From Pelomyxa schiedti (lineage: Eukaryota; Protista; Evosea), in assembly GCA_020536535.1 (NCBI GenBank), contig JAHLWZ010000602.1, positions 1-64,000 on the forward strand: a stretch of 64,000 nt of DNA. The letters are read 5' to 3'. Positions 26,073 through 29,630 of the stretch are shown piece by piece. The notes beneath the pieces were generated by a model. The model made no database searches, was not told the origin of the DNA, and saw only the letters and a list, made by a program, of their open reading frames with translations. The position numbers and the translations under genes are program-made. Numbering within the stretch: the stretch's first letter is position 1; each line of letters begins with the position of its first letter.

Positions 26073-29000
26073 ATGTCAACCAAAGGGGGTACAAAGAAAG
26101 CCAACAAAAATCCGAATCCGACGCCGAAGGTTTTTTTTCCCCCAGTGCTTTTCCTTCTTTGTTGTGAGGATTTTGTTCTATGCGTTGTAGAAATACCACT
26201 TATATGTAAAAACCAAAGGAGGATGTGACTGCAGCAAGTAGTAAGGAAAGCGGGTCATTTCAGGACAAAATGAACTTGAAGGCAAATAAGAGTGAAAAGA
26301 GGGTGTGTAAGTTGGGCAAATTCTTGGTTCCTGGCCGCATGTACTGTGATTGCCAAGGTTATTGCTTGGTTGCAGTTAAAACTTGACAAATTGAATTACA
26401 CTACAGCTGCCAAACATGGGCTCCTCACTAATTGTCTGAATTGTGGCAAAATCATATGTGAACAAGTTTGTGCATTCCCTTTTCCAACTTGAACAAAGGG
26501 GATAGCATATCGAACCTCTCTTATACAACATCAGGAAGGTTACGGCCCATGCCCTTTTTGTGGGTCGATGGTTTCACCCCCTCCTTCAATGAAAAAGATG
26601 GCCAGTGGTGGGGGTTCAAGCTCCGCTGCGAGTGCTTCTGCTTCCGCTGCGGCTGCCGCATCCATTCCACAGATGACAAAAGCTATTGAGCACAAGGATA
26701 TGATGCTCAACTTCGATAAAACATGTGCCCAAAGAACAGTTGTTCTCGGTTCTCTGTTTCTTTTTTGTATGATAAAGTGATTGGAGCCTATAGATGATCA
26801 AGCTGATTACTATAGCACTTCGGAGTGGCTGTCTCCAGAAGAAAAAGCACAGAGACAAAAGGAACTAAAACGTAGAGAGCAAAAGAGACAGTATAGCTTT
26901 TTCCCCTTCTTACAGCCACTTATTTTTCACCTCAGGCGTGAGGAACAAGAAAGAAAGAAAATGCACATAAGCTTTGATTTTGCAGGGCGAAGAGTGTTCT
27001 TCACTGAGGGTGAATTAACCAGTTTCTTTAGTGTTTTTAAAAGTAGATAGATGCCAGCCAACCTAACCTGCAACCTCAATCTGCCATGCTAAAACCGTTG
27101 AAAAGCAATCCTTTTGAAGGTAAAATAACAAGCAAGAAAAATAATCAACCAAAACACAACTGTAGGTCCCAAACCAGTTTTTGAATCGCACGGCCCACCT
27201 CCAATTATGTTTACTCCTAAAAGGTACTATCCTGCAAGTGCTAATTTTCTACCATTTACCTTGATGTAGTGCTCCACATGAACATAGTACCTCCAGGAGA
27301 GTCCAGCATGACTATTTTAGTGTTGACCCAAATGCAGCCTTCGTACCTGTTGATGAGGATGATTTTACTGGTCACCCCATTTTCCAAGTATCTGAGTTCT
27401 CACTTGCTCTTTAGAACAGGCTGCGCAAGCAAGTAATACAGCTCCCTGTCACGCTCTTCCGATATGTGGTTCCTCTGAGGGAGTCTTTTTCAAAAGGTTT
27501 GGCTCTTTTCCTCATTTTTCTTACTAAGAAACACAATTAGATATCACGACACACGAGAAAGAACGTCACTGCTATCATTAATGCATGAAAGCAATATGAA
27601 TCATTACTTATTTGTTCCAGAAAGGCAATGAATCCTCTAACTTTTCTGGAACTTACTCGAGCTCAGCAACTGGAGATCTCTGTGTGCTTCTGTTGTACTC
27701 ACAGATATTGTAACACTGTGCCAACAACAAAAAATTGAATTGAACGTTGGGATAGCGCCTGATGATATCAATTTGAACTCCGAGGCTGATATAAACACAC
27801 TAACTTCGAAGTTCTTTGAGGCATGTTCTGCGCCACGAGCGCACCTTTACTTCTAAATAATGATTTTCCTCAAAAACAGATTCTTTCTTGTGGCGTAACA
27901 CACTTCTCCTTGTTTTTATGTCAGCAACCAAATCAAAAGGCTCTTGGAAACCGCCTGGCCAAAGCCCAGGTATTAATATCCTAAACAAGCTATTCCACCA
28001 CCTTACTGGCTATAAATTAGGCTCATGTGGCCAACAGTGTTATTGCTCGCCTCACTGAGGGGTTATCAAAAGTAGCTGCCGCCGCTCTTAGATTTTACTT
28101 CTGCACGTTTACGTCCCAAGTAGATTTTTCTACTATCATAGAGACAGAGGAGGAACCGAGCTGTTCTGCTCCTTCCCCATCTGTTCAAAATTTTTGGAAA
28201 GAGCTCGATCTTAGCCTTGATAAAAGGTGGTCTCCCGTTTTTCTTTGTTCTCTGACCTTTTTTCTACAGGTTTCTGATAATGATACAAACTTTACCAGTT
28301 TGCTGCAGTGCCAGTGTACCAGCACTGCTTCCACCACAGCTGTCCAAGCAATGGGCCCTGGGAGCCTCATCTGCTTTCCCTTCTCACAAATTATTGTTGC
28401 TGGACCACTATCCAGCAACTGATCATATTAAGGCGTCAGTTCCATTCCCATTGCCGTACTCTGTTAGTATTTTCCTATTTGCGTTTCTTTAACATTTTCG
28501 TAGGGTCGAGATGCGGGACTGTGGGAACATTTTGAGGGCTGTTTGGTTGCCTGTTCTCAGTGGCCTTATGTTGACACTTTAACCCTCAGGACTGCTTTTG
28601 AGTGCCTAGCGAATCCCTTAACTTATTCTCCGTTGGCCAGGTTAGACCACACTTTGCTCCAATAGTTAACCCACAACGAAAGTTTGAAACAGTCCTTACT
28701 GCGCCTCTTCTTTGATGTGCAGCTTGTTGAAGATATTCTCGCGTTAGTAGAGGTGGGTGCTTGGAGTGGAAGGCGGGCAAAAAAATAACAAACCAAAGGT
28801 TGCTCCCTGCTCCTCGAATGCTGAGAATGATGTTGCTATCAAAAAACAGCTATCGCTATCTATAAGAAAGGACGAACTTCCTGGTACCCCGATCAAATTA
28901 CAACTTTCACGCCGATTTTTATGCAACTGCAGAACTCAATAAACGAATTGTACGTGTGAGCAGGAGCTTAAATGGGAAAATTGCGTCTGAGCTCCAACCA

Positions 29001-29630
29001 TTTTTCTATCTCATTTCAAACTTTTTGCAAGAGCTCTCTGGAAACACACCATCCAAACCTCCAACTGTGTCTCCGCCACACAGTGGCCAATTGACCCCAT
29101 CACAAAAACCTCAGGCACAGCCGCAACCTACACCACAATCACAATCCCAACCACAACCACAATCCCAACCACAACCACAACCTCAGCATCAACCGACACC
29201 ATCCCAACCTCAACGACAGCTACAACCACAGTCGACAGCACAACCGGCCCCAACACCACAGCCGCAACAAAGTACGCAGCCGCAAATAACACTGGAACCT
29301 ACGCAACAAACTGCACCCCAAGTCCCCTCAAGTGCACAAACCACAATATCCCCATCTGCTCAACCCCCACAACCACAACCACAGCAACCCACCGTGACTC
29401 CACAAGTACAATCAAAACCCAAGGTTACAATCACCACCAAACCTCATGCACCTTCCCCACCCTCTTCACAGCCACCACCTCCACAACAACAACAACAACA
29501 GCAGCAACCAACACACACCCCCTCACCACCTTCACAGACCAACAACCCTCAACAAATGACAGTAACCAAAACAATCAACACAAGCACTTCAGGCAAGTCC
29601 GTCTCCATCGTAGTAACTAAAAAGTCTTGA
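26073..29630 (+). CDS. TRIP4/ASC-1-type C2HC5 zinc-finger protein fused to a pseudo-O-GlcNAcase (GH84-like) domain and a Gln/Pro-rich tail
   Basis: CDCQAAKHGLLTNCLNCGKIICEQEGYGPCPFC, AIEHKDMMLNFD, DDQADYY and FDFAGRRV. In-frame splicing continues into ICGSSEGVFFKR...NHYLFVP...GIAP...HFSLFLCQ...DHYPATD...PYSGRD. Confidence 0.75.

Follow-up and report, generated by a model that had tools for sequence, protein, structure and literature searches.

The window analysed here, the first 64,000 nucleotides of contig JAHLWZ010000602.1 (C602 in what follows) of the anaerobic amoeba Pelomyxa schiedti, carries on its forward strand a gene composed of two very different halves. The first half encodes the modules of TRIP4, also known as ASC-1, whereas the second is predicted to encode a catalytically dead barrel derived from family 84 of the glycoside hydrolases (GH84), followed by a low-complexity tail (Table 1). 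The gene model was obtained by reading the three forward frames and checking the splice sites of every exon. An exon-by-exon check of phase and stops gives a summed exon length of 2667 nucleotides with no internal stop. The introns span 41-89 nucleotides, mostly 41-51, and all of them end in AG, 16 having a GT donor and the other two a GC donor. The guanine plus cytosine (GC) content is about 40-46% across the spliced portion of the gene, rising to 51% in the last exon, which is rich in Pro and Gln. Such a GC level, together with numerous short exons and very short introns, is typical of the genome of P. schiedti, for which 7.43 introns per gene have been reported, 1.59% of the introns being of the GC-AG type (PMC8887013). 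The splicing by hand on which a preliminary description of this locus was based holds up well, since the frame is open over the 19 exons and all the peptide blocks quoted in that description fall within exons 10-16.

Every profile or sequence search of the window gene was done exon by exon on stop-free pieces, and the work requiring a whole protein was done on one of its orthologues. These came from a large protein search with the piece encoding the third domain of TRIP4 as a query, which returned eight hits, two of them taken further as orthologues. The first one, P0006, is an uninterrupted open reading frame (ORF) of 720 amino acids (positions 53-2215) that fills a transcript-like Logan contig of 2276 nucleotides from run SRR17973842, with a GC content of 31%. 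The second one, L132, is a genomic contig of 3089 nucleotides from run ERR12015700, with a GC content of 41%, which contains the same gene with introns. The top score of this search belonged to P0001 (1164 amino acids), where the query was matched in 16 short stretches; this protein is more likely a low-complexity repeat of charged residues than a relative of TRIP4.

Table 1. Features of the TRIP4/GH84-like gene and of the separate ASCH gene (positions are those of the window unless a contig is given).
Feature	Position	Strand	Remarks
Whole gene	26073-29630	+	ATG at 26073, TGA stop at 29628-29630; 19 exons, 888 codons plus stop
Exon 1	26073-26129	+	
Exon 2	26219-26357	+	
Exon 3	26407-26465	+	
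Exon 4	26535-26748	+	
Exon 5	26794-26890	+	
Exon 6	26936-27009	+	
Exon 7	27051-27119	+	
Exon 8	27166-27223	+	
Exon 9	27270-27370	+	
Exon 10	27415-27496	+	
Exon 11	27541-27624	+	
Exon 12	27667-27820	+	
Exon 13	27880-27969	+	
Exon 14	28021-28226	+	
Exon 15	28270-28462	+	
Exon 16	28504-28640	+	
Exon 17	28683-28752	+	
Exon 18	28799-28883	+	
Exon 19	28933-29630	+	
C2HC5 zinc finger of TRIP4/ASC-1	26330-26576	+	PF06221; split over exons 2-4
TRIP4 third domain	26794-27009	+	PF23134; exons 5-6
RVQHDYF segment, last TRIP4-type element	27298-27370	+	Exon 9; 57% over 35 amino acids in L132; matches P0006 residues 330-341
Junction intron between TRIP4 and GH84-like parts	27371-27414	+	44 nucleotides, phase 1; L132: identical position, phase and split Glu codon
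Predicted GH84-derived (beta/alpha)8 pseudo-glycosidase domain	27415-28752	+	Exons 10-17; collinear profile matches
GH84 profile match, positions 25-47	27551-27619	+	10.4 bits, rank 2
GH84 profile match, positions 69-110	27698-27820	+	14.9 bits, rank 1
GH84 profile match, positions 109-128	27874-27933	+	1.5 bits, rank 12
GH84 profile match, positions 213-233	28361-28426	+	-0.3 bits, rank 42
GH84 profile match, positions 246-295	28504-28653	+	6.7 bits, rank 3
GC-AG intron 11	27625-27666	+	42 nucleotides; L132 counterpart: identical place and phase, GT donor
GC-AG intron 12	27821-27879	+	59 nucleotides; L132 counterpart: identical place and phase, GT donor
Cys-Gln replacing the GH84 catalytic Asp-Asp	27919-27924	+	Aligned to profile 'allfDDipe'
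Pro/Gln/Thr/Ser-rich low-complexity tail	29040-29627	+	Last exon; Q 49, P 48, T 27, S 25 of 196 residues
Stand-alone TRIP4-type ASCH gene	C450:4161-4903	-	Two coding pieces, both similar to the ASCH domain of human TRIP4

The TRIP4 half lies in exons 2-9, which comprise the zinc finger (zf-C2HC5), then the third domain and finally the 'lasso' motif RIQ..YF. In Pfam, the zinc finger reaches 22 bits within the single-exon piece 26280-26489 and 28.4 bits together with the neighbouring exons, above the cut-off of 25.8, which bears out the TRIP4 zinc finger that had been proposed from the sequence alone. Both orthologues retain its pattern of Cys and His residues, and residues 148-171 of P0006 match positions 26391-26462 of the window with 17.2 bits. 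The third domain reaches 39 bits in piece 26781-27047 (cut-off 27.7), and when the whole genome was scanned in six frames this locus was the only one to contain it (this and the other genome scans used the assembly of 52,367,397 bases in 5337 contigs). Since the domain occurs nowhere else in the genome, the window gene is its only TRIP4 homologue, and it is likely to be the single orthologue of TRIP4 (ASC-1, or Rqt4 in yeast) of P. schiedti, with an altered C-terminal end. The last TRIP4-type element is the RVQHDYF segment, which we take to correspond to the peptide located just before the ASCH domain of human TRIP4, where the lasso ends. In the human complex, the lasso peptide lies in a groove of the C-terminal cassette of ASCC3 and supports the ASCH domain (PMC10076317).

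The second half of the gene is revealed by profile evidence. A degenerate DNA pattern for the motif G(V/I)VEGF(Y/F)G.PW gave 120 bacterial and archaeal loci, and our own GH84 hidden Markov model (HMM) covers 105 catalytic domains, bacterial and archaeal, in 347 positions. This HMM was run unfiltered against the 3016 stop-free pieces of at least 10 amino acids found in the six frames of the window, with 1435 hits. The hits ranked 1-3 all fall inside the gene, between 27551 and 28653, on the forward strand and in the order of the profile. The best collinear chain sums up to 33.5 bits, whereas none of 488 other segments of 1.5 kilobases, on either strand, exceeds 3.4 bits. When P0006 is included in the profile, exons 11, 12, 13, 15 and 16 score 14.4, 17.9, 2.5, 3.2 and 7.0 bits, respectively, again in order and with a sum of 45. 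In Pfam, NAGidase is the only family matched by the piece of exon 12 (E 0.26, 11 bits, profile positions 58-98), a match that is insufficient when taken alone. The preliminary description had placed a likeness to GH84 at 27460-28750 and called for a search with the GH84 profile, and the collinear matches within 27551-28653 are in agreement with it.

The orthologues lead to the same family. P0006 has Pfam matches to TRI4_N (37.3 bits), zf-C2HC5 (43.3 bits) and TRIP4_3rd (61.4 bits) and, further on, to NAGidase with 32.1 bits (cut-off 25; residues 401-625, profile positions 57-286), with no match to any other glycosidase family. Its residues 353-653 align to positions 5-330 of our own GH84 profile, and its best match by sequence in the PDB is the GH84 enzyme of Thermobaculum terrenum (5diy, E 0.001). 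Compared with the pieces of the window, P0006 gives matches in order through both halves, the top five being all in this gene; a word search with P0006 returned only itself. Each of exons 2-18 shares 46-73% amino-acid identity with L132, the introns not being conserved in sequence, and the GH84 profile chain is seen in L132 too.

A true GH84 gene is located elsewhere in the genome, on the reverse strand of another contig (C116:53379-54330), with introns, an intact FDD motif and 106.5 bits for PF07555. Its closeness to the window barrel is not detectably above that of bacterial GH84s. A pairwise tblastn comparison of this gene with the window gene gave only noise, word searches with the C116 GH84 piece and with the window piece 28021-28419 gave no matches, and a search for related loci among the contigs of the genome with the C116 GH84 as a query gave nothing. 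The existence of this gene qualifies the term 'O-GlcNAcase' used in the preliminary description, for which 'GH84-derived domain' should be substituted, as this name presupposes no orthology to OGA. The genome-wide six-frame scan with PF07555 missed the window gene and, as the scores of its single exons are below threshold too, the GH84 signal is visible only as a collinear chain. Both this blank scan and the fruitless comparison with the GH84 of the same genome, together with the Pfam E value of only 0.26 for single exons, are what would be expected if the likeness to GH84 were due to chance or belonged to another family of triose-phosphate isomerase (TIM) barrels. Such an explanation is nevertheless exceedingly improbable, as the five matches stand in the order of both the genome and the profile, forming a chain ten times the best one elsewhere that recurs in L132, and P0006 passes the cut-off for NAGidase alone among the glycosidase families and finds a GH84 as its best PDB match by sequence. 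Exons 10-17 thus appear to encode a very divergent GH84 barrel whose likeness to the family goes beyond chance.

The two halves meet at a phase 1 intron, and the question is whether they belong to one gene. A truncated TRIP4 gene next to a separate GH84-like gene, both joined only on paper, would gain some credit from the TRIP4 exon, which in frame 0 could continue to a TAG at 27412-27414, and from a TRIP4-like gene of another organism (L133, described below) that stops shortly after the pre-ASCH motif. However, only 44 nucleotides separate the two parts, and the GH84-like frame, after its stop at 27393-27395, contains no ATG ahead of the G..EG block that opens the barrel. The position and phase of the junction intron and the codon that it splits are kept in L132, and the ORF of P0006 runs uninterrupted through both halves. 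Together, the shared junction intron, the missing ATG and the single ORF of P0006 make two separate genes very unlikely. The fusion claimed in the preliminary description would therefore be real, and conserved in all three organisms, judging from these comparisons. An alternative donor for the junction at 27388 was rejected, since the introns would then be of 27 or 32 nucleotides.

The two introns with GC donors are supported by their counterparts in L132. At intron 11, the exon end VPE is kept in L132, and P0006 aligns through to 27625 (FFLEKE versus FVPERQ); at intron 12, every GT donor available breaks the frame. A GT donor at 27614 paired with an acceptor at 27661 was rejected, as it loses the VPE kept in L132 and aligned in P0006. 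Two GC-AG introns out of 18 in this gene compare with 1.59% genome-wide.

Selection was measured on gapless codon alignments of the window gene with L132. The proportion of synonymous differences (pS) is 0.81-0.83, which is saturated, and that of nonsynonymous differences (pN) is 0.165 for the TRIP4 part, compared with 0.313 for the GH84-like one. In the GH84-like exons, amino-acid identity is 52%, with a pS of 0.83 and an uncorrected pN/pS of 0.38. Such identity in the face of synonymous saturation places the GH84-like part under purifying selection, which is weaker on the barrel than on the TRIP4 modules and speaks against a pseudogene. A decaying pseudogene, or a dead remnant of a fusion, could be suspected from the lost catalytic residues described below, from the GC donors in two of the 18 introns and from the long low-complexity tail, a region with a GC skew of -0.63 where the Pfam scan finds no family. 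This possibility is highly improbable, though, considering the frame open over 19 exons, the selection on the barrel, the architecture common to three organisms and the location of the GC donors at conserved intron positions.

In GH84 enzymes, the Asp-Asp pair provides the general acid/base and the residue that polarises the acetamido group of the substrate. The preliminary description had reported Cys-Gln at the place of this pair, at exactly the codons where our alignment puts it, and the orthologues have lost the pair as well, with Leu and His in L132 and Thr and Glu in P0006. The same fate has befallen most of the sugar-binding residues. According to the structures of OGA, N-acetylglucosamine (GlcNAc) is contacted by the Lys of the PKDD motif, the Tyr of PTEY, the Trp, Asn and Asp of WDN..ND, and the Asn of NPM. 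In the window, the Lys of PKDD falls in VPES, the Tyr of PTEY in CTFTS and the Asn of NPM in VACS, while WDN..ND has become LDHYPATD, the last Asp alone being retained; in the alignment of P0006 to our own profile, the PKDD segment is deleted. The positions in contact with the sugar are hence mostly replaced, and differently across the three orthologues, whereas the strands and helices of the core have been kept. Since the Asp-Asp pair is lost in the window, L132 and P0006 alike, the barrel is predicted to be catalytically dead, in line with the earlier proposal.

A barrel without its catalytic acids might still bind GlcNAc or O-GlcNAc proteins, as a 'reader', or even hydrolyse them via other residues. 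The conserved core of the barrel, the Asp retained in LDHYPATD and the presence of a true GH84 in the genome would be compatible with this idea, and bacterial GH84s mutated in the catalytic Asp have been crystallised with bound O-GlcNAc peptides, according to the titles of their PDB entries. We nonetheless regard it as unlikely: not only the Asp-Asp pair but also the Lys of PKDD, the Tyr of PTEY, the Trp and Asn of WDN and the Asn of NPM are replaced, in a different manner in each of the three orthologues, and P0006 lacks the PKDD segment altogether. In addition, a six-frame genome scan gave no candidate for OGT (PF13844) although GH84 is present, an absence that is unproven in such a fragmented and intron-rich assembly.

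The fold of the barrel was modelled on P0006. AlphaFold, given 42 aligned GH84 domains as input, produced for residues 345-700 a model with eight beta-alpha units, a mean predicted local distance difference test (pLDDT) of 82.4 and a predicted template modelling score (pTM) of 0.82. Using this model, the top 50 matches of Foldseek against the PDB were all GH84 enzymes, with query-normalised template modelling scores (TM-scores) of 0.61-0.70. The model would indicate that the barrel of P0006 is compatible with the GH84 fold, and it is not independent proof of it.

Several points weigh against the reading of this gene as a TRIP4 orthologue that carries a dead GH84 barrel as a scaffold. The GH84 scores of single exons are weak, at most 18 bits, and exon 10, with the G..EG block, and exon 14 give no score with the GH84 profile on their own, being too short or too diverged to score singly. 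The splicing of the window gene was deduced from its sequence and from comparison with its relatives. When AlphaFold is given the single sequence of P0006 345-700, the resulting model is of low quality (pLDDT 42), and the better model is partly circular, because the alignment used as its input consisted of GH84 sequences. Regarding the TRIP4 half, the genome scan gave no candidate for TRI4_N (PF23135), though the control genomes gave none either, and a search for exons of this domain upstream of the window gene found none; as mentioned above, the domain is present in P0006. The net charge of the barrel is -11 in the window and in P0006 alike, so an acidic barrel is not an obvious nucleic-acid-binding stand-in for ASCH. 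Finally, the binding to ASCC3 and the scaffold role discussed below are what we infer by analogy with the human protein.

A C-terminal ASCH domain in the same polypeptide is a feature of animal, plant and most other TRIP4s. The preliminary description had remarked that TRIP4 normally ends in this domain, a remark that leads to a separate gene. ASCH (PF04266) is found by Pfam in none of the exon pieces of the window gene, and its sole match in the genome is on contig C450 (4676-4786, reverse strand; 31.7 bits, cut-off 21.2). The two coding pieces of this gene match residues 437-489 (E 6e-15) and 517-580 (E 7e-10) of human TRIP4 (8alz), as well as the isolated ASCH domain 2e5o (E 5e-16 and 1e-10), with generic ASCH proteins scoring far lower. 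The first piece has its own ATG after an in-frame stop, and nothing TRIP4-like, none of the N-terminal modules, was found upstream. With ASCH absent from the gene on C602 and alone on C450, P. schiedti thus has its TRIP4 divided between two genes.

Some related loci complete this picture. The gene L133:1707-3190 (forward strand), on a metagenome scaffold of the ENA with a GC content of 61%, is TRIP4-like, with a zinc finger and a third domain close to those of the window. It terminates soon after the pre-ASCH motif and shows neither an ASCH nor a GH84 signal, which hints that the split of ASCH may have preceded the gain of the GH84 barrel, L133 being a possible intermediate form. As for the partner of TRIP4, tandem Sec63 units are found in the P. 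schiedti genome at two loci, C793:126543-130470 and C306:1189-4922 (both on the forward strand), as expected for the dual-cassette helicases Brr2 and ASCC3/Slh1, and a partner helicase is thus plausible.

Among known systems, human TRIP4/ASC-1, which belongs with ASCC3 and ASCC2 to the ASC-1 or ribosome-quality-control trigger complex, resembles the window gene in its order of modules, from the C2HC5 zinc finger through the third domain to the pre-ASCH peptide. Contrary to the human protein, the product of the window gene would have a dead GH84 barrel in place of ASCH, which is encoded by a separate gene, and an added Pro/Gln-rich tail. Rqt4 of yeast keeps the zinc finger and is not known to carry ASCH, which would show that members of the family can function with no ASCH in the same polypeptide. 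Unlike the window gene, Rqt4 has no glycosidase-like domain. In the RQT complex it is the TRIP4-type subunit that accompanies the Slh1/ASCC3 helicase (PMC10076317).

With respect to the other half, the (beta/alpha)8 scaffold appears homologous to that of GH84 enzymes (human OGA, NagJ from Clostridium perfringens, BtGH84 from Bacteroides, and 5diy), with motif blocks collinear from G..EG to the ..NP..Y.P helix. Contrary to these enzymes, the window barrel is devoid of the Asp-Asp pair and most of the contacts with the sugar, and is fused behind the modules of TRIP4. Animal OGA carries an acetyltransferase-like domain; after the window barrel Pfam finds no family and hence no domain of this type. 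Pseudoenzymes derived from glycosidases, such as the chitinase-like lectins of family GH18, usually keep the sugar-binding groove. The window barrel would share with them the selection on a barrel that has lost its catalytic acids, whereas here the residues of the groove are not conserved and the domain sits inside a helicase cofactor. No paper in which GH84 appears together with TRIP4 was found in our literature search, and to our knowledge this would be the first GH84-derived pseudoenzyme. The families themselves are known; the novelty lies in their combination, in the dead GH84 and in the split-off ASCH.

The role of the protein can be approached from its human counterpart, in which the zinc finger alone is enough for stable docking on ASCC3, the lasso and the ASCH domain lie on the C-terminal cassette, and ASCH is required for the stimulation of the helicase (PMC10076317). 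In P. schiedti, the barrel begins about 25 residues past the pre-ASCH peptide, at the point where ASCH starts in other eukaryotes. The zinc finger may thus still dock the protein on a dual-cassette helicase of the ASCC3/Slh1 type, and the pre-ASCH peptide would place the dead GH84 barrel beside the C-terminal cassette of the helicase, at the usual site of ASCH. There, the barrel would act as a non-catalytic module for protein interaction, or scaffold, neither hydrolysing nor reading sugars, while the ASCH protein, encoded apart, may work in trans or on its own. The acidity of the barrel, the lack of conservation of its former sugar pocket and the absence of an OGT candidate from the genome scan lead us to prefer a scaffold to a reader of sugars or a binder of nucleic acids. 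The preliminary description had left the choice between 'reader or scaffold', of which the second would be favoured and the first, with most of the GlcNAc-contact positions lost and not conserved among the three orthologues, disfavoured.

A more daring proposal is that the dead barrel was re-tooled to read a sugar or other mark on stalled ribosomes, nascent chains or RNA, thereby steering ASCC3/Slh1, with the ASCH protein acting separately. This is decidedly unlikely; if true, such a recognition module would amount to a lineage-specific rewiring of the rescue of collided ribosomes, linked to glycosylation.

Returning to the scaffold that we favour, what the arrangement means for the family follows from the function of TRIP4. 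As a cofactor, TRIP4 activates the ASCC3/Slh1 helicase, an enzyme that takes apart collided ribosomes and has roles in transcription and repair. In this amoeba lineage, ASCH has been taken out of the polypeptide and a barrel of an apparently inactive glycosidase stands at the same spot, kept under selection in at least three organisms. Even though this is an evolutionary curiosity more than the solution to an open problem, the arrangement offers a natural experiment on the requirements that the C-terminal module of TRIP4 has to satisfy.

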